DNA of 64,000 nucleotides from Laetmonice hystrix (Eukaryota), in the NCBI GenBank assembly GCA_965235115.1, contig OZ249436.1, positions 52,328,001-52,392,000 on the forward strand. Direction: 5' to 3'. The number at the start of each line of letters is the position of its first letter. Within the stretch, counting starts at the first letter, position 1. A program made the translations under genes and the position numbers. Under the pieces are notes generated by a model that saw only the letters and a list, made by a program, of their open reading frames with translations, did not search any database and was not told the DNA's origin. This document shows positions 2,630 to 28,217 of the stretch, one piece after another.

Positions 2630-4744
2630 ATGAACTGGGCCTTCCTCACTCTGGTGGTACACGCCATATTCACTCAACACACAGACGGTGCATTTCAAGG
2701 TAAGCTTTTCATTCATTCTGAGTTCTTTATCTTCTTGTTTGTGCTCTTGTTCTTCGTGTACGTGTTCCTCTTCTTCTTAAAATTGTTCCAGTTGGACAGC
2801 CAATGAAATTCATCGGGCGATGAATATCATTGGCGCTTCTGCAACTGGAATGATGAATTTCATTAAATTTCCCCAGTTCTGTGGGTAAACACTAATTGAT
2901 TTATGTAGTCTAAGAGCTAATCTAACTTAACAACCCAGATCTACATACGAAAAGAGACATCGATTTCGTTTATCTATATGTGCTTGACGTTTTTCGCTGT
3001 GAAACCCCCTCGGACTTTCCTTTTGTTTCGTTTGTATATTTTGTTATTTTATTTTATATATTTTTAATGCTCACAATGTTGCACCACACAGCGAGTTGTG
3101 TTGTACAGTCGTATGTATCCGTTGGCCTACCTGAACGTCTCTTACTGCTGCTCTGTTAAAGCCTATCAGCCCAATGATGAGGGTCGGGTGAGTGTGGGCG
3201 AGTTCCGACCGGAACCTACCGTCGTCTCCAAGGAGTACCAGGCCAGGCATGAACAGTCGACGGATGTCGAGGCTAAGGAAGGTGGTTATGGTTACGGTCT
3301 CAACGGCCACGGGCACGGATACGGAAACGGTGGACGTCATGGAAACGGGAACCGGTACGGGAAGGGCGGCGACGGTGGCCACTTCGGCGGGGTACATGGC
3401 GGAAACTCTCTCGGCAAGGGATTTGGTGGTGATTCCATCAGCAAGAATACTGGCAATGTGTATGTTGGGTACAGCAGTCAATATGGGAGTGGAAGTTACG
3501 GTGGGAATGGACAGATTAGTCACTCGGCCAACAAGGGTCATGAATACAGTGAATACAACACCGACTTTGGAGGTGGTACGTACGGTGTGAGTGGACACGG
3601 AGGTGCTACGTACGGTGTGAGTGGACACGGAGGTGCTACGTACGGTGGGAGTGGACACGGAGGTACTACATACGGTGGGAGTGGACACGGAGGTGGTACG
3701 TCCGGTGTGAGTGGACACGGAGGTGCTACGTACGGTGGGAGTGGACACGGAGGTGCTACGTACGGTGGGAGTAGACACGGAGGTGCTACGTACGGTGGGA
3801 GTGGACACGGAGGTGCTACGTACGGTGGGAGTGCACACGGAGGTGGTACGTACGGTGGGAGTGCACACGGAGGTGCTACGTACGGTGGGAGTGGACACGG
3901 AGGTGGTACCTACGGTGGGAGTGGACACGGTGTGAGTGGACACGGAGGTGCTACGTACGGTGGGAGTGGACACGGAGGTGCTACGTACGGTGGGAGTGGA
4001 CGCGGAGGTGCTACGTACGGTGGGAGTGGACACGGAGGTGGTACGTACGGTGTGAGTGGACACGGAGGCGGCGGAAGTAAAGGAACCTCTACAGGAGGTG
4101 ACCGAGGAGGGAGTCACGCAGGGGGCGGTGGTCATGCTGGCCGCTATGATGGAAGTGGATATGGTAAGGGTGGACACTCAGAACGGGGTGGGCAGGGTGG
4201 TCACCTAGGGAGTGGTCACCTAGGAGGGGATGGACAGGGTGGGCACTCAGGAGGGGATACAGTGGGGACAGGCGCCTTTGTTAAAGGTTATAACTATCGG
4301 GGTTTCTCGACAGGGTCGGGTTATGGTAAAAACGACGGCGGTGCAGTCGGCGGCCATGGAGGTGCGGGTGGATACGAAGGGCGTAGCACACAAGACGGCG
4401 GGCTCATGTGGCTCGGTGGCTCCCATACCCAAGGGAAGGGCGATCATTCGGGCAAAGGCCAGTCGTCCCACGCCTGGAACGGCAAGACCAAACAGGAGTA
4501 CCAAAAGGGGGCTTCAGACACCTACAGCCATGATGGCACGAAAACGAAAAAATACAACTATGGCGGATCTGGCTGGTATAAGGAGACGAGCAAGGGAGAG
4601 GTGACGGGATTAGGGAGCGCTGGAGGCCAAGGCGCATCTAAGTTTGGTGGAGAAAAACATGGCTCCCACAAACGGGTCTTAGATATTAATCACGGCAGCA
4701 AGGACCAAACTGGAGGCCACAAGCATTACTACGGCTACAGTTAA
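2630..4744 (+). CDS. Secreted Gly/His/Tyr-rich structural protein, paralog 1 (550 aa)
   Basis: join(2630..2699,3162..4744). Exon 1 MNWAFLTLVVHAIFTQHTDGAFQ is signal-peptide-like; donor AG|GTAAGC; phase-1 acceptor ttaaag|cc; GGATYGGSGH repeats; 111-aa conserved C-terminal domain; AATAAA at 4831-4836. Confidence 0.85.
3569..4063 (+). repeat. Coding 30-bp tandem repeat (GGATYGGSGH, 16 units plus one half unit)
   Basis: Unit ggaggtgctacgtacggtgggagtggacac repeated in frame within paralog 1 exon 2. Confidence 0.95.
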
Positions 4745-4938
4745 GATAATCATAAGATAATCGGTCACCCAGGAACCTACATTTGTAATGGCATTATGAG
4801 CCGAGTGGGTAATCCTGGTTAATCATGGTTAATAAACAAAATGAAAAAAAAGATGCAACGAATCTAGCCACATTAACGTTATGACCCATGCATGGACTTG
4901 AATTAACAGGTTAGAAAATTAAAGGAACGAAACATCGA

Positions 4939-5202
4939 TGTTCTGTCCCCGACTGCACAGAAAGTATAACCCAACAACAAGCCTCCATTCCAATTGACTT
5001 CTTGGTTTATTAGATGTTTGTCGTGTAGAGGTAAAAAGACTGTACGCGAACCCTAGAGCCGCTTCTCGCCAACTCTCGCTTATTCTCCGAGATTAAAACA
5101 CCGCCATCTAGTGGCCAAAGTCAGAACCCTCAAAAACCAAATCTTCCCCTCCGCCAGAGGGCGCTAAACTAAACTTAAATATATACTAGTACTACCAGCA
5201 CA
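4939..5202 (-). repeat. 3' LTR of the BEL/Pao element
   Basis: Direct repeat of 11586-11849; abuts the polypurine tract. Confidence 0.97.
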
Positions 5203-5446
5203 CTCCCCGTCTGATATCATCACGATATCACCACATATAAAGGAAAATAATAATATGTTACCATGTTCATACAGTAAATATCCTTGTGAATCGTTCTGAC
5301 TGGAACAACAACCAAATTCTCACCTGAGCTCAAGTTACTGATACATCTGTTGATAACTTACAAGCAATAGAGACCAACCTTAATGTTAGACGTTTTGTGT
5401 TTTAAACGAACACTGCTTTTACATGGGTCTGATACAAATGATTAAT

Positions 5447-8400
5447 TTACTCCACCAGTAACACCAAATCTGTAATGGGGCGGGTGTATGTTCGCATTTC
5501 CCCATCTTTCATGATTTTGACACACGCTTTACGCACCTCACCATCGTCACTGGGTAAAGTGTTCACAACAACCGCGAGTGGCCACCAATTTCTAGGAACC
5601 GCATCGTCCTTCATGAGAACAACATCACCTTCTTTGAGGTTTTTTGAGAGTTTTAACCACTTTCGGCGCACTTGGAGTCCCTGCAGGTATCCGACCCGCC
5701 ACTTAGCCCAAAACATGTCCGACAGGACTTGAACACGTTTCCACTGTGCCCGATACATGTCTTTTAGATCATATGAGTCACACATTGGAGGCATAAAATC
5801 GACTTTGCCAGTTAAGAGCATTGATGGGCTTATAACCATGGCTGACCCAGGGTCAGACGAGATCTGACCAAGCGGTCTTGAGTTAATGATGGCAGATACT
5901 TCCGCCATGAATGTTGTCAGACTTTCGTGAGTCAAGAGTTGGTTTCCTGACTCCAGAATGAGCGAGTTTAATATCCGGCGAGTCACACCGATGAGGCGTT
6001 CCCACACTCCTCCCATGTGGGAGCAGTGAGGAGCATTAAAGATCCATTTTGTTCCTAAATCAGTGAGGAAACGTTTGACTGGTGGATCCTCAACATTAAC
6101 AGTGTCAATCTTTAACTCCTCTGCAGCCCCAACAAAGTTTGTGCCCCGATCTGACCGAAACAGTTTTACAGGGCCTCTGAGAGCGAGAAAACGCCTGAGT
6201 GCATTTATGAAGGAGGAGCTACTTAGGTCCTCCACGACCTCTATGTGTACACCCCTTGTTGTCAAGCAGGTGAACAAGATCGCCCACCTCTTACTCTGGG
6301 CGACGCCACCTCGTGTGCGGCGAGTTACAATCTCCCATGGGCCGAATGTATCGACCCCCACGGATGTGAATGGTGGTCCAGGGCTAAGCCTGTCTGTCGG
6401 AAGATCCGCCATTTTTTGATGCAGTGGTTTTCCCCTCAGTCTGCGGCACACAACACAATTTTGGATGAGTGACGTTATCATACGTCTCACACCCACAATC
6501 CAATATCCATTGCCGCGGACCGATCCTTCCGTGAAATGTCTTCCCTGATGTTTCACCAAGCTATGACAATGGCTGATGATGAGACGAGACACATGATGGC
6601 CTTTTGGTAGGATGATCGGGTTAACTTCCTTCGTGGGTTGGGAACCTTTGAGCTTGTTCAATCTCCCCCCGACCCTCAGTAATCCGTTTTCGTCTACAAA
6701 CGGATCCAGTGTCCGGAGCGAACTGTTACGTGGCAGGTCTCTCCCCGCCATGAGGCACTGGACCTCTACCCTGAAAGCATCCCTCTGCACTTCCTTCAGG
6801 ATAAGGATTTCCACATCACACTGCAACTCCTGGCTGGTCATTTTCGAACAGTCGCGCCATCCCCGTGAGGCACATGATTTTGCGGCATGAGACTGTGCAA
6901 CATGTTTTAGAACCGAGAGTGCCCTCACGGCCGCTGTCCAGGTTGAAAACCTCTGAAATCGTTGACTCCCGAGACTGACCCGAGTCTCAGATTTTTTCAC
7001 TTCCACGTGGGGGCGAATTTCCTTGTCGTCATCAGGGTTGAGCAAGGGATAGTTTCCTGGGAAACAGGCATCCTGGGTGGCCTCCTTTCCATGCTGCTTG
7101 GATCCATGCAACCATACTTCCAATTGCTCCAATGTTGAGGTCAAGCATCTCGTACCACAATCGGCTGGGTTGCGGCTGGTTGGCACAAAAAACCATTGTT
7201 CAGGAGAGGCAACCCTTACAATGCGGTCCACGCGGTTACTGACATAGGTATAAAACCGTCGGGTTCTGTTGTTGATATATCCTAAGACGACCTTACTGTC
7301 TGTGTGGTACTTCACGGCAGTGAAGTGTACATCTAGTTGATCCTGTACAGTTTCTGCGATCTCTGTCGCAAGGACTGCCCCACACAATTCCAGGCGAGGA
7401 ATCGTGTGACCTCGTTTGGGAGCTAGCTTTGCTTTTCCCATGATGAATCCCATTTTCTGTTCACCCCTGGTGTCCGTCATTCTGATATATGCCACTGCTG
7501 CTATGGCCTTTTCGGAAGCATCCGAAAACACTAAGAGTTCTATTTGTTGTGCTGTATCAAGTGATTCTGACACGTACATCCTCGGAATCGCAAGTTCCTG
7601 AAGATTTTTCAGCGACGCTTTCCACTCTTCCCATTTCGCTTGACAGGCTGCTGGAAGAGGTTCATCCCAATTTGTGCCCGGAGGCGACGCCTCCCTGAGA
7701 ATGATTTTTCCCTGGATGGTGATTGGAGCAATAAATCCCAGAGGATCGAATACACTGTTTATGGCAGATAGAATTCCACGTCGGGTACACGGCTTGACGT
7801 CTGGCTCATTCTCAAATATGAAGCAGTCAGAATTCAGGTCCCATGACAGACCAAGGCTGTGTTGCAATGGTAAATGCTCTTCACCTATGTTGACGCGTTT
7901 TAGGTCCTTCCCTAGATCCTCTGCTGGGAAAGCTTTCATGACCTGTGAGTCGTTGGATACAATTTTGTGCAACCTGATGTCACCTGATGATGCCAGGGCA
8001 TGCTGAGTGCGCTTCATCAAATCAATGGCTTCCTCACGTGTTGGAAGAGAGACCAGACCGTCATCTACGTAAAAGTTTTTGCTGACCAGCTTTCGTACTT
8101 CATCATCACAAGCTGCTACTGCTCGGCGCAGCCCATAAGTTGCAACTGCCGGCGATGGGCTATTTCCAAAAACATGCACACACATCCGATACTCTGTTAG
8201 AGGCCTATCGGGATCGTTGTTTTGATACCAAAAGAACCTGAGGTAGTCTCTGTGGGCCTCATGGACTCGGAATCGGTAGAACATTTGTTCTATGTCGGCT
8301 GTAACAGCCACGCTATTCTTCCGGAAACGCAGCATTATTCCCGTCAGATTGTTTGTGAGATCAGGCCCACTCATCAGCAAGCTATTGAGGGACACACCCT

Positions 8401-11400
8401 TCGTTGTCGCTGACGAGTCAAATACACCCCTAATCTGATCCGGTTTTCGTGGGTGATATACACCAAAGAGAGGGAGATACCAGCACAGGCCATCAGGGGG
8501 CGTGGATGCTGGCTCAGCTGCACCGCTGTCGATCACCCTACTCATGAATGCGACGAAATGTTCCCTTTTAACCTTGTTTTGCCGCAGGCTGGCATCCAAG
8601 AGTTTAGCCCGCTTCCATGCTTCAGCTTTGTTGTCTGGTAACAACTGTCTAGGCTTTCTGAGGGGTAATGGAGCTGTCCAACGACCTTTTTCATCAATTT
8701 TGAACTCCATGTCCATCAGCTCAACAAATTTCCTGTCCTCCTGAGACAATCCAACTTTCTCATCATCCTTTGTTTTTTGAAATACTGTGTCATCATCATC
8801 TTCTCTTAATGCTTGGGTGTAGATTTTAGACTCTACCTGTTCCTTTAGACTCAGACTTTTCATGCACGGTTCGAAAATAGTCTCACGATTTTCTCCCAAG
8901 ACATGTGTCTTGTTCACACTAATTGAGCTGGGACAGTGAACTTTTCCCAGGCACACTTCCCCGATAATGACCCAGCCTAAGCTCAATCTCTGTGCGAATG
9001 GCATGTTGCTGGGACCGAGTATTTGTTCATGGACATGATGTACATCAGGAATGTCTCTCCCGATTAAGAGCTCGATGTCCACCTTTGGAGCGAGTTTAGG
9101 AATATGTCCGACAAGCCGCTGTAGATGAGAGTAGTGTTCCGCTATTTCTGGAGTTGGTATCTCCGACCTATCATTGGGAATGTGGTCACATTCGATCACA
9201 ACTGGCAAGTTGATGCAAGTATTGTCATGCAGTGATCCCACAGATATCCCTTTCGCACGTCTCGCTGATGCTGTGGTGCTTCCAGCGCAGGTTGATAAGG
9301 TATACTGCACCGGCTCCGTCTGTACATTGAGTTTATCAATCAACTGAGGTGAAGCAAGCGTTCGGTTGCTTTGATCATCTAAGATGGCATACACCTTGAT
9401 TGCCTCCTGTGGCTTCCCTGTAGGGTAGACATTTACCAACACTGTTTTACCACATGACCGTCCCCCAAAGCCATCTCCACACAGTGTCACACAGTTCGAC
9501 GCTAATGTTTCATTTGGAATTTGAGGTTTATCACTATCTCCCCGTTGACTGTGTTTTTCCTCCTGACCTGGACCTGGACCTGGTTTTCCAGCGTGCATGA
9601 CAGATGCGTGACGTGTGCTGCCACAATGTTTACACTTAATGTCCACTGGGCACCTCCGCGCCATGTGTTTAGACGATACACAGCATTTGAAGCAAATGTT
9701 ATTGTCTTTCAGGATTTTGCGGCGCTCTTCTAATGACTTAGCTTCAAACGCTCTACACTCACTCAAGGCATGGTTGGATTTGTGGATGGGGCACTTGTCA
9801 CTTGCTGAACTTGCTCCTGTCTCCTCAGTTTCTGTCTTTCGGCTTACGAACGTAGTTGTCCTGGTTGTGCCCTTTGATGCATTGTTTTTATTTACAGGTG
9901 CTGTGTCATACGCGAAAGCAGGATCATTTTTAACAGCACTGATTTCCCGGATGTAGTCAACAAAGAAGGAGAAAGGAGGAAATGGTACCTTGTAATAGCG
10001 CTTGTAATTGAAGGCCGTCGATGTCCATTTTTCCTGCAACCCATATGGCAACTTGTTTACCACCGATAATATGCCTGGTGATGTATCAAACTGTGCGAGC
10101 GGAGCACCATACTGGGGGTCCTCTTTGACCGACTCGATCACCGTGAGAATGTCCAGTAAATCATACAGTTTCAGAGAATCACGATTTGTAAGTTTTGGGA
10201 AACTGTCAAGTTTTGCTGTGAGTGAGGCTAGGACCATCTCAGGTCGACCATACCGTTCATTCAGTCTTTCCCAGATCAGGAAAACACCCCTGTGAGGATT
10301 GTTCATGTTTGAAGCCTTGATGCTTTGGGCAAACCGAGATGATTCAACCCCTAACCATTTTACTAACAAGTCTATCTCTTCACTGACAGTGACATTCAGC
10401 TCTTTCACCACACTACTGAAGCTATACTTCCATGCTGAGAATGACTCGGGACAGTCATCAAATTTTGTGAGCCTGGTTAAGAGTAACTCCTTTTTGAGTA
10501 AGAACTGGGTAAAAACTGATGGGTCTTGGTATACTTGCCCTACATTTTGAGTCTCAAGTTTGAAGGTTGGTGCATTTGGGTTGAGAGTATTTTCAGCTGC
10601 AGGTGTAGCCCTACTTGTGATTTTTCCTTCAAACTTCATGCCCTGGAGATTCGCCTTATGATCCCCCAAAGCTGGTCGATGTCCCTGTCCAACGGGCGGT
10701 TGTGATTGTGGGTTGGGTTGTGGGTCCAACCCTCCTGTGGTGGAGTATGCAAGGAGGTCACTAGGTGCGACAGATGCTGCACTGGCCTGTTGAATGTGAC
10801 TGTGAGAGTCCATAGCTGCTTGCTGTTGAATGCGACTGTGAGAGTCCATAGCTCCTTGCTGTTGAATGCGACTGTGAGAGTCCATAGCTCCTTGCTGTTG
10901 AATGCGACTGTGAGAGTCCATAGCTCCTTGCTGTTGAATGCGACTGTGAGAGTCCATAGCTCCTTGCTGTTGAATGCGACTGTGAGAGTCCATAGCTCCT
11001 TGCTGTTGAATGTTACTGTTAGAGTTCATAGCTGCTTGCTGTTGAACGTAACTCTGTGTTAATTCCAATTTGTTGGCTTGTACAGACGTTTGTTCCAGTA
11101 CAGGAGGAGGAGAACTGGTTACTGAACGTGGACAGCTTAATTCCTCCAGTACTCGTACCTCTGCCTCTGCTGCAGCTAACTCTGTCTGATGTTTTAGTAG
11201 TAATATCTCAGCGTCAATTTCTGCCCCTTGCCTGTCCTTCTCAGCCTTTTGTTTTAGCAGGCCTGCTTGTTTTTCACAGAACCGAAGCCGCGCACGTTCT
11301 GCTTCTACCTTAGCACGTTTGCAAGCTAGAACCATACTACTTGCCTTCGAGCTGGTGATCGACAGTTTGGAGCAGTTTGACTTGGTTTCCTCGGCGTCTA

Positions 11401-11479
11401 GGCTTAAACCACGTCCCTTTCCCGTGTTGACGCACGTGTTGTCAGTCTCGGGGGCCGAGACAGCAGCGTGGTCCGCCAT
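5447..11479 (-). CDS. BEL/Pao Gag-Pol polyprotein (2010 aa)
   Basis: Three Cys/His knuckles (CPIHKSNHALSEC, CFKCCVSSKHMARRC, CKHCGSTRHASVMH); protease AILDDQSNRT; RT ADIEQMF and FYVDDGL; Pao-type RNase H VFSDASE, IPRLELC, NPADCGTR; integrase HHCC finger plus VDTFGP/SDRGTNF/GVWERL; C-terminal WPLAVV region. Confidence 0.97.
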   Translation of the reverse strand: MADHAAVSAPETDNTCVNTGKGRGLSLDAEETKSNCSKLSITSSKASSMVLACKRAKVEAERARLRFCEKQAGLLKQKAEKDRQGAEIDAEILLLKHQTELAAAEAEVRVLEELSCPRSVTSSPPPVLEQTSVQANKLELTQSYVQQQAAMNSNSNIQQQGAMDSHSRIQQQGAMDSHSRIQQQGAMDSHSRIQQQGAMDSHSRIQQQGAMDSHSRIQQQAAMDSHSHIQQASAASVAPSDLLAYSTTGGLDPQPNPQSQPPVGQGHRPALGDHKANLQGMKFEGKITSRATPAAENTLNPNAPTFKLETQNVGQVYQDPSVFTQFLLKKELLLTRLTKFDDCPESFSAWKYSFSSVVKELNVTVSEEIDLLVKWLGVESSRFAQSIKASNMNNPHRGVFLIWERLNERYGRPEMVLASLTAKLDSFPKLTNRDSLKLYDLLDILTVIESVKEDPQYGAPLAQFDTSPGILSVVNKLPYGLQEKWTSTAFNYKRYYKVPFPPFSFFVDYIREISAVKNDPAFAYDTAPVNKNNASKGTTRTTTFVSRKTETEETGASSASDKCPIHKSNHALSECRAFEAKSLEERRKILKDNNICFKCCVSSKHMARRCPVDIKCKHCGSTRHASVMHAGKPGPGPGQEEKHSQRGDSDKPQIPNETLASNCVTLCGDGFGGRSCGKTVLVNVYPTGKPQEAIKVYAILDDQSNRTLASPQLIDKLNVQTEPVQYTLSTCAGSTTASARRAKGISVGSLHDNTCINLPVVIECDHIPNDRSEIPTPEIAEHYSHLQRLVGHIPKLAPKVDIELLIGRDIPDVHHVHEQILGPSNMPFAQRLSLGWVIIGEVCLGKVHCPSSISVNKTHVLGENRETIFEPCMKSLSLKEQVESKIYTQALREDDDDTVFQKTKDDEKVGLSQEDRKFVELMDMEFKIDEKGRWTAPLPLRKPRQLLPDNKAEAWKRAKLLDASLRQNKVKREHFVAFMSRVIDSGAAEPASTPPDGLCWYLPLFGVYHPRKPDQIRGVFDSSATTKGVSLNSLLMSGPDLTNNLTGIMLRFRKNSVAVTADIEQMFYRFRVHEAHRDYLRFFWYQNNDPDRPLTEYRMCVHVFGNSPSPAVATYGLRRAVAACDDEVRKLVSKNFYVDDGLVSLPTREEAIDLMKRTQHALASSGDIRLHKIVSNDSQVMKAFPAEDLGKDLKRVNIGEEHLPLQHSLGLSWDLNSDCFIFENEPDVKPCTRRGILSAINSVFDPLGFIAPITIQGKIILREASPPGTNWDEPLPAACQAKWEEWKASLKNLQELAIPRMYVSESLDTAQQIELLVFSDASEKAIAAVAYIRMTDTRGEQKMGFIMGKAKLAPKRGHTIPRLELCGAVLATEIAETVQDQLDVHFTAVKYHTDSKVVLGYINNRTRRFYTYVSNRVDRIVRVASPEQWFFVPTSRNPADCGTRCLTSTLEQLEVWLHGSKQHGKEATQDACFPGNYPLLNPDDDKEIRPHVEVKKSETRVSLGSQRFQRFSTWTAAVRALSVLKHVAQSHAAKSCASRGWRDCSKMTSQELQCDVEILILKEVQRDAFRVEVQCLMAGRDLPRNSSLRTLDPFVDENGLLRVGGRLNKLKGSQPTKEVNPIILPKGHHVSRLIISHCHSLVKHQGRHFTEGSVRGNGYWIVGVRRMITSLIQNCVVCRRLRGKPLHQKMADLPTDRLSPGPPFTSVGVDTFGPWEIVTRRTRGGVAQSKRWAILFTCLTTRGVHIEVVEDLSSSSFINALRRFLALRGPVKLFRSDRGTNFVGAAEELKIDTVNVEDPPVKRFLTDLGTKWIFNAPHCSHMGGVWERLIGVTRRILNSLILESGNQLLTHESLTTFMAEVSAIINSRPLGQISSDPGSAMVISPSMLLTGKVDFMPPMCDSYDLKDMYRAQWKRVQVLSDMFWAKWRVGYLQGLQVRRKWLKLSKNLKEGDVVLMKDDAVPRNWWPLAVVVNTLPSDDGEVRKACVKIMKDGEMRTYTRPITDLVLLVE
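10788..11047 (-). repeat. Coding 36-bp tandem repeat in gag (QQQGAMDSHSRI, ~7 units)
   Basis: Seen directly in the DNA and in the ORF translation. Confidence 0.95.
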
Positions 11480-11574
11480 TGTGGTTTTCTCGACGTCTAG
11501 CTTTTTAAACCATGTCCCTTTTCCGTGTTGACGCCCGTGTTGTCAGTCTCGGGCTGAGACAGCAGCGTGTTCGT

Positions 11575-11585
11575 AGTCTTTTTAC
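11575..11585 (-). other. Non-tRNA primer-binding site GTAAAAAGACT (element sense) abutting the 5' LTR
   Basis: Lacks the TGG start of a tRNA PBS; exact reverse complement of LTR positions 11678-11688. Confidence 0.75.
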
Positions 11586-11849
11586 TGTTCTGTCCCCGAC
11601 TGCACAGAAAGTATAACCCAACAACAAGCCTCCATTCCAATTGACTTCTTGGTTTATTAGATGTTTGTCGTGTAGAGGTAAAAAGACTGTACGCGAACCC
11701 TAGAGCCGCTTCTCGCCAACTCTCGCTTATTCTCCGAGATTAAAACACCGCCATCTAGTGGCCAAAGTCAGAACCCTCAAAAACCAAATCTTCCCCTCCG
11801 CCAGAGGGCGCTAAACTAAACTTAAATATATACTAGTACTACCAGCACA
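11586..11849 (-). repeat. 5' LTR of the BEL/Pao element
   Basis: Direct repeat of 4939-5202; AATAAA in element sense at 11658-11653. Confidence 0.97.
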
Positions 11850-12035
11850 ATCGATGCACTTAATTATTAGTTTACGAGAAGAAAAGAAATTGAGTTTACT
11901 GCCGTGCATTGCTGATCGTTGCGCGACGTCGTGATGGGACGACTCCATGATATACGACTTCTCCATAGGGACGGTCTCTATCTCCGACAGAGTATTACTG
12001 GCTATATGAACTTATATTGTTAATCAGTTGGATGG

Positions 12036-12660: not shown

Positions 12661-14641
12661 TTATGTGGTTGTGTGAATGGTGTGGATTCTGCAGTGTACG
12701 GTTTGCACAAGGTTCGCAGGGTAACAGGGTCTTTGCAGGAGAGGTCCCATGGCTGAAGGGGGTTTAAACTTCTTGATCACACACTGAATATTGCTGAAAT
12801 ACTGCTGGTAAGGCGTAACACTTCTTTGATATGACTTGTTGAGGGTCGACTATTTATATTCCTGTCAACTGTTACCATGACATGGGAATTCCTGTCACCT
12901 GTTAACATGATATGGGAAGAAAGAAGGGAAAACAAAGGCAAAAAGAGAAGGAAAGAAAGTTAAATGGCGGATTGGAAATAATGACAAAGAAAAGACAGAT
13001 AACAAGTGAAAATGTGGTACAATATGCAAAGCAGAAAATAGTAAACGAAAGATTAAAATGAAGGAACGAAAATGGTGACAGTAAAAACTGGATAGACAGG
13101 GAACAACGAAAAGAAATACAGAAATCAACCCACGAAGAATGGTTCTAATACTTGTTTTCCTGCGTCTTCATCTTCACCTTCATGTTGATCACCTTCTTTG
13201 CCCCGCGTCCTGTTTCGCACCTCCTTTTATCGAACTCCGAACCCATGTATACCGAGACTATTACCCGTAGCGTCCGTGCCATCTTTAATTTGATAAGTCG
13301 ACGTTCACTTTGTAACATGTCTGGACGGCTGTCCCCGACTCTGGAAACTGGTCTTTAAATTCAAAGTGACAGTGCACTTTAAATTAAATATCGCATGGAT
13401 CCGTCGTCATTTTAAGTCGCACCTGTCCGGGGAGGTCGAACAATCAACTAGTAAGTGGCCACCTGGCTCTGTCTTACCGTAAGAGACCGTTTAGTCGCGC
13501 TTAACGCGAGACGTTATTCCCAACTTTACACAGCAACAGCCCCCTGGCTGTTGAACGAGACACACATAAGGTAACGAAGATCTGGGACGTGTTTTTCGGC
13601 ATGCATAAACGTCTTATTAAAATAAATCCATCCCATAGATCTGTCAGGAATATACATCAATCGTCATCCGATCATGCCAAGCGAACGTAATAGTTTTGAT
13701 TTGGCGTTTAAAAACTAGTCTCGTTCGATATGGCTTTACAATACGAAACGGCTGGCGTGAATGAACAAAATGAACAAACAATTGTTTAGAAGGTTAATAA
13801 CCTGGCATCAGCGTATCAGTCATGGACTTCAGGTGAATTGTGTCTCCTACAATGATATCAGGAGAACCGATTAATGGTAATGTGCTCATCGCACTGAATA
13901 CTAGAGATCTGTATGAGGGAAGTGGTCGCATTACAAATTACATCAAAGGCCATTACAGCATAGTGTTTATATCATAAAGCTAAATGACTGGTCTGAAGGG
14001 TCAAATTGATTTGTTGCCTAATGGAATGTGCCGAGCATCCTTCTAATAGCTTTGTAGACCTTGTGCCAATACCCAAATACTGCCAAATGTAAATACTCAG
14101 TGTAGGAAAAAAGGTTTTAATTTTAATAAGCAGAATATACTGGAACAATATACCACTCTCACAAAACATTGTGTAAAGCGGCTAGACGGGTTCAATATAA
14201 CTGCTCTGAAAACTGATTTTTTCGCTTTGTATACTTTTATCCGGGAAAGCACTTTTGTGATAATCATTGTTAGTCCAGACCATCACTGTACCAATTGTTC
14301 CAATCCAAGACACTCATCAGCTTGTGGAAGTACTTTTGTTATCAGTATCCAACGATGCTATTAAACGTGCTCATAATATATAGGCCTCTGTATACATAGG
14401 AATGTACATACGAACACACTGTCCTATTAATATGTATGAGTATAATCTTTTCCTGTATTCCCTATGGATCATCCTTGCCACGCCTACCACTGCGCTACTC
14501 CTTATATATGGACATCAAGAAGTGGATCCACAAATCTTGTCTTTCCGAGAGCCGCCTACCCACATTTTCTCTGTTGGCTGTCTTGAGGTCGTTTCATCCC
14601 AGACAGATCCGGTCACCGCAGACAACCGTCCGAGGGCTGCC

Positions 14642-16054
14642 ATGAAGCCGCATCCATTTCTACTGCTCGCGCTGGTGACATTCACCATAGGCGAACCTAT
14701 AGGTACATAATTCCTTTTTCCGTCACGCCATATTCACATGCAATCGTCACTTTTGGGGGAGCTGGGGCAATTTAGGAACTGAACTATAAGCTTTAATGTA
14801 CGTGAAATCGTCAAAATCCCACATGGTTAAATTGAATTTTATATTTTTGTACTGATGGGCATCTACATGGAGCGATTAATTAATCTTGCCATATTCAAAA
14901 GCGGCTACCTATACACCATGAGCAAACACCATCCACCTCTCTCAGAAACGCTTTCATGCAGTGTTGGATCCCCGCCTGGATGAAGGTGACTTGTCTAACT
15001 AGACCTCACTGCCTTGAATCGTTGTACAAACCTTAGAAACATCATCCTATGTTATCTTATTGTTACAGTGAATAACCGCGTAGACGCTGGAGGGGATGTA
15101 GCGAAGGAGGTGGAGGGCAAGAGTGGTTACGGCGGACACTATGGCGGGTACGGCCTTGGCCACGGACATGGTGGTCACTATGGCGGACACGGTGGTCACT
15201 ACGGCGGACATGGTGGTCTCTACGGCGGACACGGTGGTCACTACGGCGGACACGGTGGTCACTACGGCGGACATGGTGGTCTCTACGGCGGACATGGGGG
15301 TCACTACGGCGGACACGGTGGTCACTACGGCGGGCATGGTGGTCACTACGGCGGACACGGTGGTCACTACGGCGGACACGGTGGTCACTACGGCGGACAT
15401 GGTGGTCACTATGGCGGACATGGTGTAGGTCACGGCGGAGGGTATGGACACTATGGGCATGGCCACGGTCACGGCGGTCATGGTTACGGAAATGGTCACT
15501 ACGGTGTCGGCCATGGTGGTTACGGTTACGGACACGGTCACGGTAGTCTACACCATGGAAGTGGACATCATCACGGCGGTGGCGGCTACGATTACGGAAA
15601 CAATCAGGCTCACCACGGGGGTCACAAAGACAGCTACCACCACGACAACCATAAGGTTGGATCACATGGAGGTCATGGTTCACATCAAGGAGGTAGCAAA
15701 CATGACGGAGGGGACCAGTGGTACGGGGGAAGTCACAGTAAGGGACATGGCGGCGAGTCCGGCCATGGTCACGCCGACCAAACCTGGAACGGGAAGAGCC
15801 AAGAAGGGTATCACAAGGGGGAAGAAGACAAGTACAGCCACTATGGGACGAAGACGAAAAATTACCATTATGGAGGAGCCGGCTGGTACAAGGAGAACAG
15901 TCAAGGTCATGTAACCGGCCAGGGTCACGCGGGCAAGCACGGTACCGGACATTTCGGTGGGCACAAACACGCCAATAAATACGAGCAGGCCAACAATCAT
16001 TACGGCAACCAACAGAAGGCAAGCGGTCACAAACAGTACTACGGCTACAACTAA
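14642..16054 (+). CDS. Secreted Gly/His/Tyr-rich structural protein, paralog 2 (348 aa)
   Basis: join(14642..14702,15069..16054). Signal-like MKPHPFLLLALVTFTIGEPI; donor AG|GTACAT; phase-1 acceptor gttacag|tg; GGHYGGH repeats; 111-aa C-terminal domain; AATAAA at 16106-16111. Confidence 0.87.
15170..15421 (+). repeat. Coding 21-bp tandem repeat (GG[H/L]YGGH x12)
   Basis: Twelve in-frame units; Leu variants at units 3 and 6 suggest a 63-bp higher-order duplication. Confidence 0.95.
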
Positions 16055-18991: not shown

Positions 18992-21532
18992 ATGAAACCA
19001 ACTAGTCTGATCGTGTTGGCTCTGGTCGTATTAACCCAGGATGTCTTCAGTCGAGAGCTTATTCGAGGTAAGTCCAATGGGCCGGTTGATTGTAAATGCT
19101 GTCATATATCATAGTTGAATGATTCTTTTTTTTGAAATATGAAAAAGATTCCACGGTCTAATTCAAGTAAATATGGTAGGTCTATACAAAGGACGGTGGG
19201 TAAATTACTTTGAGACGTTTGTTCATTATCTGCAGTAAACGGGTTGGTCTCTCCAAACGTGTATTTAAAAAAGTTCAGAAAACGAAAAAAAAGTTTGATT
19301 ATTTGTCACGTAGAAAATATAGATAGCTTTTGCCTGGGTTAGTGAAAAAAAGGTTTCTTTATTGAAACCATAGCCTCCGCCCGTATCCAATGGTCCAGCC
19401 CTTATATTTATTAGTCAATACATGAAATATTTGGCTCGATTTTACAAATTGAAATGGGCAAATCAGCAACGTTTCTTTCCGTTCGTTAACACTGACCAGA
19501 TACAGCAGGAAGACAACATACCAAATGGGATTTATCCGCACTCCAGAATATTTCTAATTGACAAAAAGGGGCACGTTTTGTATCTAACGCCACCTAATCA
19601 CATCGGGGTAGGGGGTGCCNNNNNNNNNNNNNNNNNNNNNNNNNNNNNNNNNNNNNNNNNNNNNNNNNNNNNNNNNNNNNNNNNNNNNNNNNNNNNNNNN
19701 NNNNNNNNNNNNNNNNNNNNNNNNNNNNNNNNNNNNNNNNNNNNNNNNNNNNNCTGTTGTCTCCTGGACCACTTTGGAACCTTATCGTTGAATGAGCAAG
19801 TGTTAGCTGTCCCATACTGCGTCTGCAATCTGCAAGGCGAACACCAGAGTACCGCAAAACAGACAAAGGGGCCCATTGTCCCCGGATCCCCTCGAGAAGT
19901 GAATACTTGGGAGCTGAGTCCACTGATCCCAGAACCTCTCTATTATCATCTTATACTTGGGAGCTGAGTCCACTGATCCCAGAACCTCTCTATTATCATC
20001 TTATACTTGGGAGCTGAGTCCACTGATCCCAGAACCTCTCTATTATCATCTTATACTTGGGAGCTGAGTCCACTGATCCCAGAACCTCTCTATTATCTTA
20101 TACTTGGAAGCTGAGTCCACTGATCCCAGAACCTCTCTATTATCATCTTATACTTGGGAGCTGAGTCCACTGATCCCAGAACCTCTCTATTATCATCTTA
20201 TACTTGGGAGCTGAGTCCACTGATCCCAGAACCTCTCTATTATCATCTTATACTTGGGAGCTGAGTCCACTGATCCCAGAACCTCTCTGTTATCCGCTTC
20301 ATGTTTTATATGTAAATGTTTGTCACTTACTTGCTGCAAGGTCGATGGTTTCCTCGGGTACTCGGGTTCCGCCAACTGTCAAACTGACCGCCTTGATATA
20401 TCACTGTCTGTTACGAAGGCATAACGGTATCTCCGATCCCAATTCTGATTCCAATCACACGAAATCGATCTATATGATCTAACCGGGATGAGCTGGAGTT
20501 GAGGGATAATCTGTAATTGATTGATGACCCATATAACAAAGGTCTTTGCAAGTTTCATCAGTGGTTTATGTCAGTGGTTAGGGAGGCAGTGGGGGTTAAT
20601 AGGTCTGATTACGCAAATGGCCTCAAACTTTTGGATCATTTACAAATAATTATTCCAAGTCTGTTTGGCTGGTCCATCACAGGCAGCTCAAGCTTCAGTA
20701 ATCTTGAACTTAACTTTTTAACATTGTGTAGAGGGCTCGCAAAACCAGCCCCTCATTTAATTTAGAAGCAGTTTAGAGGGGTGCACGGGTAGGCTCCCTC
20801 CCTCCCTGCCTCGCTCCCTCGCTCCCTCCCTCCCTCCCTCCCTCCCTCCCTGTTGCGACGGACTCATGTCAGTGACACTGAGCCTACTTCACGTCTTCAG
20901 AGTCTGAGTGTGCATTTCAACCACCTCTCTAACCGAAACATCGAAATCGTAGGATATGCTTACCTGTCTAGGATCCATCAGAGAACAAGCACCTCACATT
21001 GTGCAGAATTCCTTTAACGGCTGGTGCCCACTCTAGCATTATCGGTTTCCTTCCACTCCCAAGACTTTCAAACTTTGGAATCGTAACGATTCATGCAACC
21101 TCTCGAATTCTGGTGGACGTTATCGTGAGCCGTGGCCACAAAGGTTGGCGCCTGAATTATTCTATCCAAGCGCGTTGAAGGCGTCACCTAGTGGAATTAC
21201 TAGAAGGCATGTACTCCGTGCTGACAACTTGGCGTACAGGTGGCGCCACCGTCTATTATCGCTAGTTGTATTGAATATGCTAAAAGCTAGAATGTCTTAT
21301 CGGCTTCACTTAGTTTCATGTGACATCGCTTGCAGCATCTGGATATTATGTCTGTTTGAACTTAAGGGTTAAAGGGGTAATTTTACTTGATAATTCACAG
21401 TGGTCATCAATGGGCACATCAGCAGCCAGACCGCAACTGGCATAGGCTACTACTAAGACGCCATCTGTCGATACAACTTCCCCACTGACTTAGGAGTCTC
21501 CCCCTGTCTCTCTGTCTCTGTCTGTCTGTCTA

Positions 21533-21598
<66 letters not shown>

Positions 21599-22452
21599 GG
21601 GGGGGGGGGTAGGGGGTGGCGGGATTAAACCCCTTTGCCATCCTGCCATGCCCATATAACCTGAATTGGGAGAATCATATTGTGGGGGTTCTGCAAGAAC
21701 TCCTTCACAGCTCTGATGTAGTGACTTATCTAGTCCACATCACTGCATGCTAAAACAGTAAATGGTCCGTAGAGTTTACACTGATGGGTCTTTGTTGCTG
21801 TGTTCCAGGGTATGATGCCTACGACAATGGCAGGGACTACAACAGAGGATATATTGTGGGCGACACTGCCGTCAACGCGGTGAGAGAAGAGGAGGTTGAG
21901 GGAAAGGCGGGCTACGGTCACGGTTACGGTGGCCACGGCGGTGGTCATCACGGCGGTCACGGCGGTCATCATGGCGGCGGCCACTACGATCACGGTCATC
22001 AGGAATCACACCACGGCCATGATCACGGCGGACACTCCCACGGCGAACACGGCGGCGGTCATCACGGCGGCCACGGTCAACACGAAGGTGGGGAGAACTT
22101 TGACGGCGCCGTCAAGTGGCACGGATCGCATCACGGTCAGGGCAGCGGCAAGGGCGGCGGTCACGGGCACTTCGGGAAACACTGGGAGGGCAAGGACCAC
22201 GGAGGCTTCAAAAAATCCGGCCACGACCAATACCACCATCACGGACATAAGGAAAAGCATTACCACTACGGGGGCTCGGGATGGTACAAGGAGGTCTCTA
22301 AGGGCCAGGTTCATGGTCATGGAAACGCAGGAGGTCACGGTCATGGCCACTTTGGAGGTCACAAGCACGGCAAAGATCATCACCAAGGTCATGACCACCA
22401 TGGACATCATGGGCACACTGGCGGCCACAAACAGTACTACGGTTACAATTAA
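18992..22452 (+). CDS. Secreted His/Gly-rich structural protein, paralog 3 (239 aa)
   Basis: join(18992..19067,21809..22452). Signal-like MKPTSLIVLALVVLTQDVFSRELIR; consensus donor AG|GTAAGT; phase-1 acceptor ttccag|gg; 111-aa C-terminal domain. The intron spans an N gap. Confidence 0.85.
19620..19753. other. Assembly gap (N run)
   Basis: Run of n characters. Confidence 1.
19903..20294. repeat. 50-bp minisatellite, ~8 copies (one 47-bp variant)
   Basis: Unit atacttgggagctgagtccactgatcccagaacctctctattatcatctt repeated head to tail with no spacers. Confidence 0.95.
20250..20430 (+). mobile_element. Degenerate invertebrate SINE (V/Meta-domain-like body)
   Basis: gtttgtcacttacttgc...aggtcgatggtttcctcgggtactcgggttcc...aaactgaccgcc resembles the widespread mollusc-type SINE core; recognised from memory, not searched. 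Confidence 0.55.
20795..20850. repeat. (CCCT)n microsatellite
   Basis: Direct inspection. Confidence 0.9.
21505..21596. repeat. Compound (TCTG)n/(TC)n microsatellite
   Basis: Direct inspection. Confidence 0.95.
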
Positions 22453-23774
22453 TTGTACCCCTTTTTGGTTTTCTAATGTGGAAACATTTGATACAAAGTG
22501 GCGACTGACTGAAGTCTTTATTTTTATGGGACTTTTATACCATGGCAACCTGACACTTCCTTTCATTGTAGAACACCTAACACTATCAGCTTTCTTTCTC
22601 AGAATCTGCTCTCAACTTATGCTAATCTATGCTACAATCAATACAACTGACGCTTGCCGTACCAGCCCATTTCGGAAATGGCGCGGAATTTAAAAAAAGA
22701 GATATATTTTCATACTTTCAATATGGATGACATGCGCGAAATATGGGCGTGAAATACAGTAATTTATGGTTTTTTTCACTCCCATATATAGGAATCCCTG
22801 TAATTATTATTTCATTCATGAGATGAAATAAAACTATAGACAGACAGATACGTGACATGTTATTTATTTTCATGGTATGATAAAGCAAAACAGGAAAAAT
22901 AATAAATAAATAAATAAATAAATATGATTTAAAATCAAACCAATAGCTTCCCTAAAGGTCGGTGTAGTCGACAGTAAAGAAGACATAAACTACATGATGG
23001 TTATGGTGAGTAAAGCATTATATCATTCACATGATTAGAGCCAAGGCATTCTGTAAGATTGACCAGTAGGCCTATCTTCCCAAGAAAAGGTTGACTGTTA
23101 TGTGATAGTCATGCATAGATTATTATTCCGATTTCCCGGTGTCGACAGAATGTAATAATTTGTTATACTCTCCCATTGCAGCAAAGAATAACCATGGTGA
23201 ACGAAGGCCGTGCTTTCCTGCCTGGCGGGGAGGAAGGATACACCCCTGAGACCATTAATGATTCCGTCATCTTGTCAACTCCATGCACATGAATGTCAGA
23301 AGCAACATGTATTTTGCAGCGCTGTGCTTATAAATAAATGATTATGAGAAAAGGCACGTGGAAGTATTCATACCAGTTCTTGATTATAAAACGCTCTATG
23401 CGACATATATCAAATAGATATTAAATGAGAATGCAAGCATAACAATTTAAGAGCACAGTTTCCCACAGCCATTAGCAGACCTGGACAATTTATAATGTCG
23501 AGTGTTTATAGGCCTACGACTGTCGGGTGACTGGTGCGACCTTCCTGTCTATTCCCTGCCCACATTGTTCAAGGTCATCATTGCAGTAAGTTCACGATGC
23601 ATTTGACCCGTTCATGTTAGGTTACATAGCCATACGTAGTTATAAATACACCTATCTGTAAACCTGCAAACACCCAGATAGAAGTACAGAAGTAGACTCT
23701 ATGAAGTATAATTCTTATTGGCACAAAACGGACTCATATCTAGACCTATATCTAAATATAAAGATTCAGCGAGA

Positions 23775-23933
23775 NNNNNNNNNNNNNNNNNNNNNNNNNN
23801 NNNNNNNNNNNNNNNNNNNNNNNNNNNNNNNNNNNNNNNNNNNNNNNNNNNNNNNNNNNNNNNNNNNNNNNNNNNNNNNNNNNNNNNNNNNNNNNNNNNN
23901 NNNNNNNNNNNNNNNNNNNNNNNNNNNNNNNNN
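23775..23933. other. Assembly gap (N run)
   Basis: Run of n characters. Confidence 1.
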
Positions 23934-26241
23934 GTTGGCAGTAAACTTTCCCCAACTGACCAGTGCCGTAAAACTAGATGAGATGTCATCTAAACATGAC
24001 AGCACAAACATTCCATTAATTCTTGAATTAGTTCGTTGTCGCCTCCGTATAATGACCTGTAGGTGTTAGTGTAGTGTTAAAGCAGAGTGTCGAACCAGTG
24101 TGGGATTATCCCGATTTTGCTTGAAAATCCCGAATCCCGACGCAACCTTTGAATTCTAATTCGCATTGGCGTCGCTTAGAATATCGTCTGTGTGGGACCC
24201 TGTAGAGGAACGCCGGCCATCTTTGTGATTTGTCTCTGTCTAGGGTGACCTATGCCGCCCGACTCTCACGCTTTATAAAGATACACTCCTTAAAACAAAT
24301 TTAATCTTCTCCAACCTCCGGTTGCTAAAGAGAAGCATTTATATTAGAAGGGAATACTTGACCCGAACATCGTTTAACGACTTACTGCCGGTCCACATTA
24401 AACATTAACGACCTATCTGAGCTAACGGCAACAACTTTAGGCGAACGTGCAGGACATAATCAAATTCCAGTTGAAAGGTAACGTTATCAGTCTGCTCTGA
24501 AAGGTCATGTGGGGTTCAGTGTCAGACAGGTGTTGTGCGGGTAACGTACGCCGGTCAGTGACGTGCCCGTCAATCACGCGTCGCCATGTGTCAGTTTGGA
24601 AACCTTCAGTCAGGACAACGTTTCACCTCGGATCCTGTCGCTCCAATCCGAAGTACAGCAACGAGCGCAGAAATATTTACAAGCCATCAACACGCCAAAA
24701 TGGACCGTGATCGATACATAATTATATTCACGACATACATCATTTGTGTAGCCAAAATATCGCCCAACGGGTCAACTGCACGATAAAAATACTCTTGGTA
24801 AATAAAAGTGTTATGCTAAATACCGTTTTGTGAATAATTTCTTTTTTTTAAGTGTGTGCCATTATGCATAGATGCATTCCACGAGAGACGAAAGGGTTCA
24901 GTATAGATAATTAGTGGACAGAATGTAGATGATCTACATCGTGTTAAGTACTTTGGTCACTGTCCACTTTAAATTTTAGGCACGTGATGCAAGTCTTTCA
25001 GAAATGATAAAAGTGTTTGTGTTGTCTCATATCAATCTCCAAATAATGTACAGAGAGACTTCGCTGGTGAAAATAAAAACCTTGATACTGACAGCAACTG
25101 TTTGGGAGGCGTTTTATGGCTTATGGTACGAAATTTGTTGAATCGAAAAAGAGCATGGGCTCTACAGAGAAAAACTTGGCATAGTGTGTATCAAAAACGG
25201 TAGTCCCAAACGACAACTTATTATTCATGAACTTTGTACCTTCTGATTATCTTCAACCACAAAAACTATGGTGATGAAATTATTCACTTTATGGCTGTTA
25301 GTTCTCTTCAATAAGACAAAAACAAAGCAAAAAAGATGGAGATAAAAATGGTGATGGAATTATTCACTTTGTGGCTGTGAGTCCTCTTCATTAAAAAAAC
25401 ATGGAGAAACAAATATTTATTTTGTGGCTCTTAGTTTGTGGCTCCATAGAGACGAAAATATTCAAATTATTTATCGCCAAAATGTTATAGAGATGAAATT
25501 ATTCACTTTGAACCGCAATCTCTCTTTAACCTACAACACCCATGGAGATGACCTTTATTTATGTTTTCTGCTGGTAATTGCCATGATGGTGGCTGATAGT
25601 TATTGAATGTGATGTCCCATCCATTGGATCATAACCCAGACTTGTCAGCACTAAGCTTTGAACTTTATCTTAAAAAAAAACGATTCTGCAGCAGTCTTAT
25701 AACTAAGGAAACACAAACGAAAATTGCAAGCGAGCGAAAGCAGAAAGTTCAGCAGATCGTTCAAAACTTTTGTCACTAGCCCATTATATCTGGATTTCTT
25801 TGCACGTGCGATTTCAGAGCGTTCTAAGCTATATGGTCTGGTTGGAATGTTGAGTGAACCCTAAGAAAAAGATAACATAGGTACATTAATCTGATTCAAT
25901 TTGGTTTAGGCGATCTCTGGAATGATCACGTTGGTGATTATTCATAAATAGTCAGTCTATCCGCAGTACAGGGTGTTCATAAAGACGTTAAATAGGTGCT
26001 CTGTCAAATCTACTGACATTTAAATTATCATTTCAAGTGTTATACATTTGTCTGTGGTTCCCATGGGCTTGTAGGTTCCCAGATCGCTAACGGACAGTCT
26101 GACTGACCGACACTCCCTCTCAGGCTCAGTCACCAGGAAACGGCGAGACAGAAAAACACGCCCGCGTGAATCAACGTGACGAAAGGTTCCGTGTCTCCAG
26201 TTCTGATTGGACAAACCAGCCGACTGCCCATCTTATGTTCG

Positions 26242-26250
26242 TATATAAAG
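26242..26250 (+). promoter_or_regulatory. TATA box of paralog 4
   Basis: TATATAAAG about 190 bp upstream of the ATG at 26437; reverse CCAAT (ATTGG) at 26206-26210. Confidence 0.6.
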
Positions 26251-26436
26251 CAGGACGGTTGACTTCTCAAGACAACTTGGCTGAGTCCTTCCACAGTCCA
26301 CAGCAAGGAGATACACGGGACTATTTTAGTGACAGGAGGCAGTGTAGTTCAGAAGGAGAACTTACAGGAGGAAAGTTACCTGGGAGATACCGTGCTCGTT
26401 TAGTTATCAGCTCCTGGCGGGAGCAGCAAAGCCAGG

Positions 26437-28217
26437 ATGAAGGCCTTTAGTTTGATTTTGGTGGTGGCTTTCTACGGCCGCCATGTGTTTACTAGGGACC
26501 TCGGCCGGGTAGAAGGTAGGTACTCACTTGAGTATAGAAACTGTTGTCCTAATGTCCCAACCCAGACGGGGGGGGCGATACGTCCACGTCAAAATCTACC
26601 TTGCCACAAGCTTTGCTCTAACGAAATCAGAAAAAAGTTGGACCCTTCTTCTGTTATTCTCGTTATTGTGTTGTAGCTTTTTGAAGTAGGCCTACAAAGG
26701 TATTTATTTTCTGGACTGAACTGAATTGGTATGAAATTCCTGTCTTATAACTGTAGGGCCTATTGTAATTCGGATCGCTCTGGTTCAAAATGGTGCCCTA
26801 GATAGTTTTGGCAGCTACGCTTTACGTCTACTTTACTGCAAGCTCAACATTGCCCATTTTACAATCAGTCAATCAGGAGGAAATCCATATTTCAGGTCAC
26901 TCGTAACGTCATTATCATAAATGAAACTCTTAGGTTCTTGGCCATCTTAATGTCAAGATGGTCAAGGAAAGGTATAAATTTATGTTGTATGAGGGCTAAT
27001 CGTAGTCACCAAAACAATCAGCAACTTTGGAAGTCCTTAAGTTGTATAGGCAACTACGGGCATCTTCTTGGCAGATATAAAGATTTGAAAACGGAAACGT
27101 TAATTAACAGAATATAGCGTAAGTAGAATCCCAAGGGAATTGTGGTTAAAATTTGGATATGGGCTTAATTATCTCCGGGGCCCAATGTTCATTTAAAGGA
27201 AGCCATTGCGAACAATGTTGAGAAGTATCAAATGCTAATTTTCTCTCCTGAAAGGATGAAGGACCTGAAAAAAAGACACTCCTACCTTTGGCTTGCGGCC
27301 AATTGCTATCTGTTTACTCTTGTTCGTGACGGTTTCCTTTGCCTTGAAAAATATTTAACTTTGCTTACTACAAAACGTGACAATCAGTGTTGGTTTACTA
27401 GTAGAGAAAATCTTTTTTTCTATGTCCTTCACGCTATCGGGTATAGACAAACTTCAGTTGGTTTCCACAATGTATCCTTCTAATCTAAGACTTTTCCAAT
27501 CAGTTTTTCGATAAACCATCACAGAGTAATGTCACTCTGGTCAATTCAATTGCAGGCTACGAGGCTGGTGAGGTCGGAGGCCAAGCAATCTTCGACCATA
27601 GTGAAAACGCTCCCTATCGCGAAGCCGACAATCGTTTCCCAGCTGCAACGGAAGTGGAATATAAGCCAAAAGTGGAAGGCAAGGACGGGTACTCCGGTGG
27701 TTACGGGGGTCATCACGGCGGTCACGGCGGTCATCATGGCGGCGGCCACTACGATCACGGTCATCAACAATCACACCACGGCCATGATCACGGCGGACAT
27801 TCCCACGGCGAACACGGCGGCGGTCATCACGGCGGCCACGGTCAACACGAAGGTGGGGAGTCGTACGACGGCGCCGTCAAGTGGCACGGATCGAATCACG
27901 GTCAGGGCAGCGGCAAGGGCGGCGGTCACGGGCACTTCGGGAAACACTGGGAGGGCAAGAAGCATGATGGATTTAAAGCGGCCGGCCACGACCAATATCA
28001 CCATCACGGACATAAGGAAAAGCATTACCACTACGGGGGCTCGGGATGGTACAAGGAGGTCTCTAAGGGCCAGGTTCATGGTCATGGAAACGCAGGAGGT
28101 CACGGTCATGGCCACTTTGGAGGTCACAAGCACGGCAAAGATCATCACCAGTCTCATGACCACCATGGAAATCACGGGCACACTGGCGGCCACAAACAGT
28201 ACTACGGTTACAACTAG
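26437..28217 (+). CDS. Secreted His/Gly-rich structural protein, paralog 4 (246 aa)
   Basis: join(26437..26515,27556..28217). Signal-like MKAFSLILVVAFYGRHVFTRDLGRVE; donor AG|GTAGGT; phase-1 acceptor ttgcag|gc gives an open frame GYEAGEVGG... into ORF 27654-28217; about 95% DNA identity to paralog 3 over the last 507 coding nt. Confidence 0.87.

Follow-up and report, generated by a model that had tools for sequence, protein, structure and literature searches.

A tandem array of genes for secreted-type His/Gly/Tyr-rich proteins with a conserved C-terminal domain in Laetmonice hystrix

Genes P1 to P4

The stretch of DNA analysed here (the window) comprises 64,000 nt of Laetmonice hystrix (assembly GCA_965235115.1, contig OZ249436.1, nt 52,328,001–52,392,000, forward strand), and carries four genes, P1 to P4, for predicted secreted proteins rich in His, Gly and Tyr. 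They were recognised as four long open reading frames (ORFs) on the plus strand with the common ending ...GHK[QH]YYGY[NS]. To build the gene models, each was joined to an upstream ATG that opens a hydrophobic stretch and leads to a phase-1 GT donor, paired with a phase-matched, pyrimidine-rich AG acceptor where the long ORF begins. All four introns are phase 1 with GT..AG ends, and the spliced coding sequences are multiples of three without internal stops, giving proteins of 550 (P1), 348 (P2), 239 (P3) and 246 aa (P4). An earlier note on this DNA had described four same-strand, two-exon genes, each with a signal-peptide exon, a phase-1 intron, an acidic region, a Gly/His/Tyr block and the same C-terminal domain, and the in-frame spliced models bear this out.

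Exon 1 of P1 (nt 2630–2699; coordinates in this section refer to the window and the plus strand) encodes the signal-peptide-like sequence MNWAFLTLVVHAIFTQHTDGAFQ and ends in a phase-1 donor, GTAAGC. Copy G has an identical exon 1 and copy F a near-identical one; both are among the paralogues found upstream of the window (see below). Exon 2 (nt 3162–4744) has 526 codons plus a stop, and specifies an acidic linker, a block of about 17 decapeptide repeats of the GGATYGGSGH type, encoded by a 30-bp in-frame tandem repeat (nt 3569–4068), and a conserved C-terminal domain of 117 aa (nt 4391–4741), delimited by gapless alignment. In P2, exon 1 (MKPHPFLLLALVTFTIGEPI; nt 14642–14702) likewise has a phase-1 donor and is joined to exon 2 (nt 15069–16054) by an assembled sequence from run X4 (see below). 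The second exon carries the linker, 12.5 heptapeptide repeats (GGHGGHY) encoded by a 21-bp in-frame repeat, and the C-terminal domain (nt 15701–16051, by alignment); an AATAAA lies 52 nt past the stop codon.

The remaining two genes have His/Gly blocks. Exon 1 of P3 (MKPTSLIVLALVVLTQDVFSRELIR; nt 18992–19067, donor GTAAGT) has a predicted link to exon 2 (nt 21809–22452), which encodes an acidic linker, a His/Gly block (His 24%) and the C-terminal domain (nt 22099–22449). This assignment is supported by the tail ...VF[ST][RG][ED]L, as it recurs in exon 1 of both P4 and the upstream copy B. P4 consists of exon 1 (MKAFSLILVVAFYGRHVFTRDLGRVE; nt 26437–26515, donor GTAGGT) and exon 2 (nt 27556–28217), with an acidic linker, a His/Gly block and the C-terminal domain at nt 27864–28214.

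Two assembly gaps fall outside coding sequence and are crossed by no reading frame, one (nt 19620–19753) within the predicted 2741-nt intron of P3 (nt 19068–21808), the other (nt 23775–23933) in the intergenic region between P3 and P4; the link between the two exons of P3 thus spans unread sequence. Directly after the gap in the intron is a 50-bp minisatellite (nt 19903–20294; 7.9 copies, 97% matches), which probably explains the break in the assembly. The same intron contains two microsatellites, (CTGT)n and (CT)n, and then a run of G (nt 21507–21596), about 200 nt upstream of the exon 2 acceptor.

Clear TATA boxes had been reported for the first, third and fourth genes. That of P1 was confirmed (TATATAAAAG, nt 2542–2551, about 80 nt upstream of the ATG) and the same motif is present upstream of copies F, G and B, but P3 has only a degenerate match and none was seen for P4. 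P2, too, has a TATA box (nt 14503).

Extent of the array

Searching the whole assembly (627 Mb, 35 contigs) in six frames with the C-terminal domain revealed eleven copies, all on the plus strand of contig 1 between nt 52,284,439 and 52,356,214, a span of about 72 kb, and no copy of the family anywhere outside this array. A profile search of the assembly with the same domain added only one low-complexity match (E-value 0.03). The window holds the last four genes, and seven further copies lie upstream of it, so that the same-strand tandem array seen in the earlier note stands while its count of four does not.

The 60 kb upstream of the window were taken and the seven extra copies modelled (A to G). 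The two-exon, phase-1 plan recurs in six of them, and over the array as a whole the signal-peptide exon with its phase-1 donor is kept in 10 of the 11 copies. Copy D (contig 1, nt 52302076–52303542) is divergent, its exon 2 part reaching 489 aa with a long N-terminal part in which some 350 Arg/Pro/Glu/Tyr-rich residues replace most of the Gly/His block; an exon 1 was looked for in this copy and not found. Three recent duplications are apparent, namely E/P2 (99% identical), F/G/P1 (97–98% identical) and P3/P4 (synonymous divergence, dS, 0.16). The near-identical F, G and P1 (536, 645 and 550 aa) differ mainly in the number of repeats.

Transcription and splicing

The sequence of P2 is present in four sequencing runs of one sample. 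Three of these cover exons, intron and flanks evenly, in the manner of DNA; over P2, run X4 (59 Mb of contigs) has coverage on the exons only. An X4 contig joins nt 14702 to nt 15069 with GT..AG ends, which is exactly the predicted intron of P2, and this junction is absent from the three DNA runs. No run is labelled as RNA, and from the exon-only coverage and the spliced contig we infer that X4 is RNA. Two base differences in the spliced contig look allelic, both being found again in one of the sample's DNA contigs. Over the C-terminal domain, X4 has another contig of greater depth, which runs on into the 3' flank of paralogue E and not that of P2, and E is therefore transcribed as well. At least P2 and E are thus transcribed. 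Among the findings that would have spoken against its proposal, the earlier note had listed a lack of spliced transcripts; for P2, one is present in the RNA-like run.

Protein plan and composition

The proteins follow one order: a predicted signal peptide on its own exon, an acidic linker, a low-complexity block of Gly, His and Tyr, and the C-terminal domain. In each of P1 to P4, exon 1 encodes the starting Met and then a hydrophobic stretch 10 to 14 residues long. The linker is variable and mostly acidic, and ends in a recurrent junction motif, [VI]E[GA]K-x-GYG. The Gly/His/Tyr block varies greatly in length between paralogues.

The exon 2 parts of all eleven copies are devoid of Cys. Their Gly content is 26–38% (14.5% in D), with 8–24% His and 6–11% Tyr; in P1 to P4 Gly makes up 28–38%, and five copies (P2, P3, P4, C and E) combine Gly at 28–38% with His at 18–24%. 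The computed isoelectric point (pI) ranges from 6.9 to 9.6, and the mature proteins from 23 to 59 kDa (213–620 aa).

The conserved C-terminal domain

The last 117 residues align without gaps over the eleven copies and one foreign homologue (12 rows). Twenty-one columns are invariant, including the second and third of three Trp, and the domain has the core D-x-Y-x-H-x-G-x-K-x-K-x-Y-x-YGGxGW[YFL]K[ES]-x-S-x-G and the end GHKxYYGY[NS]. Between seven lineages of the family the synonymous sites of this domain are saturated, the proportion of differing sites being 0.6–0.86 for synonymous (pS) and 0.17–0.45 for nonsynonymous positions (pN); where dS could be computed, the ratio of nonsynonymous to synonymous divergence (dN/dS) was 0.12–0.27. 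The domain is therefore old, constrained and under purifying selection, and for that reason is not a by-product of low complexity.

Relatives in other genomes

A phmmer search with the C-terminal domain of P2 against 1.84 billion cluster representatives gave a single true match, P0001 (482 aa, E-value 7e-9), from an unannotated ENA assembly. Its N-terminal part resembles that of copy D, and because the two have the same layout the D sub-type appears to be older than the species. Two profile searches added P0003, P0006 and P0007, unnamed ORFs on contigs of metagenome-style assemblies in ENA/NCBI. Two further candidates from the whole-protein profile search, P0004 and P0005, were rejected as matches of composition, and only P0003 was kept from it. 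Homologues in other eukaryotic assemblies cover the whole C-terminal domain. At one locus (L018, nt 9450–10516) two neighbouring ORFs jointly cover it, so that in that eukaryote the domain is split by an intron; the downstream ORF starts with sequence that gives the impression, and only that, of being repeat-derived (PPPLAQNFFIFMQFSGK...). On these matches, the family is thus present in at least two other eukaryotes.

No named relative was recovered among the cluster representatives or by the two profile searches. With hmmscan, Pfam gave no match for the four proteins at E ≤ 1, nor for any of the 12 members at E ≤ 10; a sequence profile search of the PDB and a word-indexed search with the P2 domain also returned nothing, and a literature search with peptide strings from the domain found no paper. 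The earlier note had not recognised the exact family, and these searches agree with it. It had also proposed a comparison with DUF4779 (PF16009), membership of which is rejected, as even the permissive threshold gave no match. In the ESM Atlas the whole protein retrieved only DUF4779 clusters, at 0.80–0.84, a score often reached by shuffled sequences, and the C-terminal domain alone gave no usable match. Taken together, the data support the description of the locus as a co-located family of secreted-type His/Gly/Tyr-rich proteins that carries no family name.

Neighbouring genes and repeats

The array is flanked by fragments resembling a glutamate receptor, a Ras-family GTPase and exons for the p150 subunit of chromatin assembly factor 1 (CAF-1). 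Upstream, ORF fragments similar by eye to the C-terminal part of an ionotropic glutamate receptor occur at nt 52269016–52269830 of contig 1. The small GTPase ORF (window nt 41185–41877, minus strand; Pfam Ras, E-value 5e-37) is intronless and encodes 230 aa, with a long extension at the N terminus and a basic tail at the C terminus. The CAF1A exons (window nt 60169–60951 and 63319–63816, minus strand) match the Pfam domains CAF1-p150_C2 and CAF1A_dimeriz.

Between P1 and P2 lies a full-length BEL/Pao long terminal repeat (LTR) retrotransposon (window nt 4939–11852). Its single open ORF (nt 5447–11479, minus strand; 2010 aa) has a Pao peptidase A17 domain, a reverse transcriptase, an integrase zinc domain and DUF5641, and a 36-bp tandem repeat of about seven units occurs in the 5' coding part (nt 10787–11046). 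The two LTRs, each of 267 nt, are 100% identical, and the insertion is therefore very recent.

Possible function of the proteins

The sequences show the features by which secreted low-complexity structural proteins (silk-like or of sclerotised materials) are recognised, i.e. a predicted signal peptide, more than 50% of residues drawn from a few amino acids, in-frame repeats, and no folded enzymatic domain. On balance it seems probable that they represent a new family of extracellular structural proteins that respond to pH and metals and behave like Nvjp-1, the jaw protein of Alitta/Nereis virens. This reading, like the role in jaw, radula, chaeta, beak or cuticle suggested in the earlier note, is drawn only from composition, architecture and analogy. 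In an acidic secretory compartment, protonated His would keep the proteins soluble; on release at the pH of seawater or tissue, His would lose its protons and the proteins would condense. The material could then be fixed by coordination of metal (Zn/Cu) by His and by oxidation of Tyr to 3,4-dihydroxyphenylalanine (DOPA) or di-Tyr, the latter step adding covalent cross-links as in the cement proteins of sabellariids (PMC12621633). The conserved C-terminal domain, the likeliest module for assembly or docking, would bring about an ordered assembly or attach the protein to a scaffold, and the variable repeat block, the tunable part, would set the properties of the individual paralogues.

Several observations weigh against a cross-linked structural material. 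Inspection of the flanks showed no gene for a cross-linking enzyme (tyrosinase, peroxidase) adjoining the array. The hydrophobic stretches of exon 1 look like signal peptides, a judgement made by eye and not with SignalP. In the P1-type members His makes up only about 8%, a value less typical of materials hardened by metals. Finally, AlphaFold2 run on the 12-row alignment of the C-terminal domain returned four weak strands with a mean predicted local distance difference test (pLDDT) score of 36, and so no usable fold to back a role in assembly.

The least unlikely alternative is that these genes are divergent but true homologues of Nvjp-1 and Nai11527, so that a jaw-hardening function would have come by descent and not by convergence. 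Proteins of both groups are of annelid type, secreted and high in Gly and His, and by eye the conserved module of the Nereis proteins resembles the core of the C-terminal domain, the Nereis C-module Y-x-G-x-G-x-Y-x-E-x-S aligning with Y-x-YGGxGWYKE-x-S. Four Nvjp-1-like modules from the supplement of PMC13120676 were scored against the family profile, with composition-preserving shuffles as the control. Two of them beat the shuffles (p = 0.028 and 0.0045), but the other two did not (p = 0.40 and 0.58). In hhalign the likeness extended over 15 columns (Y-x-G-x-G-x-Y-x-E-x-S; E-value 0.015), with a score equalled by 5 of 200 column shuffles and a probability of only 3%. Neither phmmer, over the 1.84 billion representatives, nor the two profile searches retrieved an Nvjp-1-like protein. 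Searches of the present genome with two short Nereis modules gave nothing at first and then one match (E-value 0.56) to a simple tandem repeat; since neither module found anything real, this argues that the organism lacks close Nvjp-1 genes. The module is, moreover, present twice in the Nereis proteins, which end in runs of His/Gly and not in GHKQYYGYN. The resemblance, one of composition plus a weak motif of 15 columns, is best regarded as a hint and not as homology, and common descent is unlikely.

A second alternative, slightly less probable again, is that the proteins are soluble and handle metals (buffering, transport or detoxification of Zn, Cu or Ni) in body fluid or mucus, and do not form a solid. 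Metal-binding His-rich plasma proteins occur in other invertebrates, and the high His content (up to 24%), set in dense HGH and HH motifs of secreted proteins without Cys, would suit such a role. The abundance of Gly and Tyr, repeat blocks that reach about 30 units, and lengths that differ strongly from one paralogue to another are, however, typical of structural proteins, and the P1-type members are poor in His (about 8%).

An immune role, as effectors or as precursors of antimicrobial peptides rich in Gly and His, is a third alternative. Cationic antimicrobial and antifungal peptides rich in Gly and His exist in several invertebrates, and tandem expansion together with fast-evolving repeats fits immune gene families. 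Known Gly/His antimicrobial peptides are far shorter, however, than the mature proteins of this family (213–620 aa, 23–59 kDa), no regular dibasic processing sites separate the repeat units, and the 117-aa domain is conserved under purifying selection. The release of a short peptide (<~100 aa) at defined sites was rejected on the same grounds of length and of missing regular dibasic sites, and an immune function is judged improbable, a shade more so than metal handling. The notion that these are not genes at all but chance long ORFs in GC-rich low-complexity repeats is refuted, for although the opposite strand also has long repeat-driven ORFs (e.g. nt 3071–4177, minus strand), it cannot accommodate an exactly spliced P2 transcript, a non-repetitive C-terminal domain whose dN/dS lies well under 1, the retention of signal-peptide exons and their phase-1 donors by 10 of the 11 copies, and homologues in other assemblies.

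A wider proposal can be made, which we find plausible although somewhat short of probable. An undescribed, lineage-restricted family may have arrived on its own at the Gly/His/Tyr chemistry known from worm jaws and squid beaks, and may have combined it with a new, conserved C-terminal assembly domain containing Trp, Tyr and Lys; jointly, the eleven paralogues, graded in His (8–24%) and in repeat length, would form a hardened or adhesive structure with graded mechanical properties. Candidates for the structure that the proteins would build are jaw, chaeta, cuticle, tube and cement.

Comparison with known systems

The His/Gly-rich proteins of worm jaws and squid beak are models for hard, light, mineral-free materials as well as for pH-triggered coacervation, and to our knowledge no more than a handful of these families have been described at sequence level. 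The present locus adds to them a complete gene family with exact gene models, its paralogues forming a natural series that differs mainly in His content and repeat number. It offers proteins that can be made recombinantly to study how they bind metals and separate into phases, and makes it possible to test whether materials of this kind had one origin or several among annelids.

DUF4779 proteins are the nearest clusters in the ESM Atlas, a likeness at the level of a lead only, and are of similar size (about 220–250 aa) and rich in His and Gly. They are, however, arthropod-restricted, 'histidine-rich glycoprotein-like' proteins, and their profile does not match the family described here.

The squid beak proteins (DgHBPs) and the Gly/His protein of the Glycera jaw resemble the present family in being secreted low-complexity proteins of Gly and His (and Tyr) with short tandem peptide repeats, and are thought to coacervate and then be cross-linked. 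They belong to other phyla or families, and a C-terminal domain of the present type is not known from either.

Sabellariid cement proteins, compared here by description, are also annelid, secreted and basic, with Gly-rich peptide repeats. In Pc-1, Pc-2, Pc-4, Pc-5 and the 'H-repeat' protein Sa-5, Tyr is converted to DOPA, and some are His-rich (PMC12621633). They differ in being known from the cement glands of tube builders.

The closest parallel is with the Nereis jaw. Nvjp-1 is soluble at low pH and comes out of solution at high pH; it binds Zn by way of His, and the Zn-His bonds stiffen the material (PMC11090348, PMC9465683). Nai11527 is a His/Gly-rich protein of the Zn-rich jaw tip of Nereis aibuhitensis, a species with 16 Nvjp-1-like transcripts (PMC13120676). 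Like these, the proteins described here come from an annelid and appear to be secreted; they have much Gly and His, contain Tyr, show a neutral to basic pI and occur as multiple paralogues, and the working model of pH-dependent solubility and Zn-His cross-links would be common to both. The composition characteristic of the Nvjp-1 family (signal peptide, Gly about 30–36%, His about 16–27%) is seen in P2, P3, P4, C and E, although composition alone does not define membership. Across the family as a whole His is lower than in Nvjp-1 (8–24% vs 27%). The clearest difference lies in the conserved part of the proteins. Those of Nereis carry a duplicated 'GKF-x-S-x-Y-x-Y-x-G-x-D...GGYVKV' module and His/Gly-rich ends, whereas the family here has a single C-terminal domain of 117 aa with three Trp and the end GHKQYYGYN, a conserved non-repetitive domain of a kind that none of the described families is known to possess.

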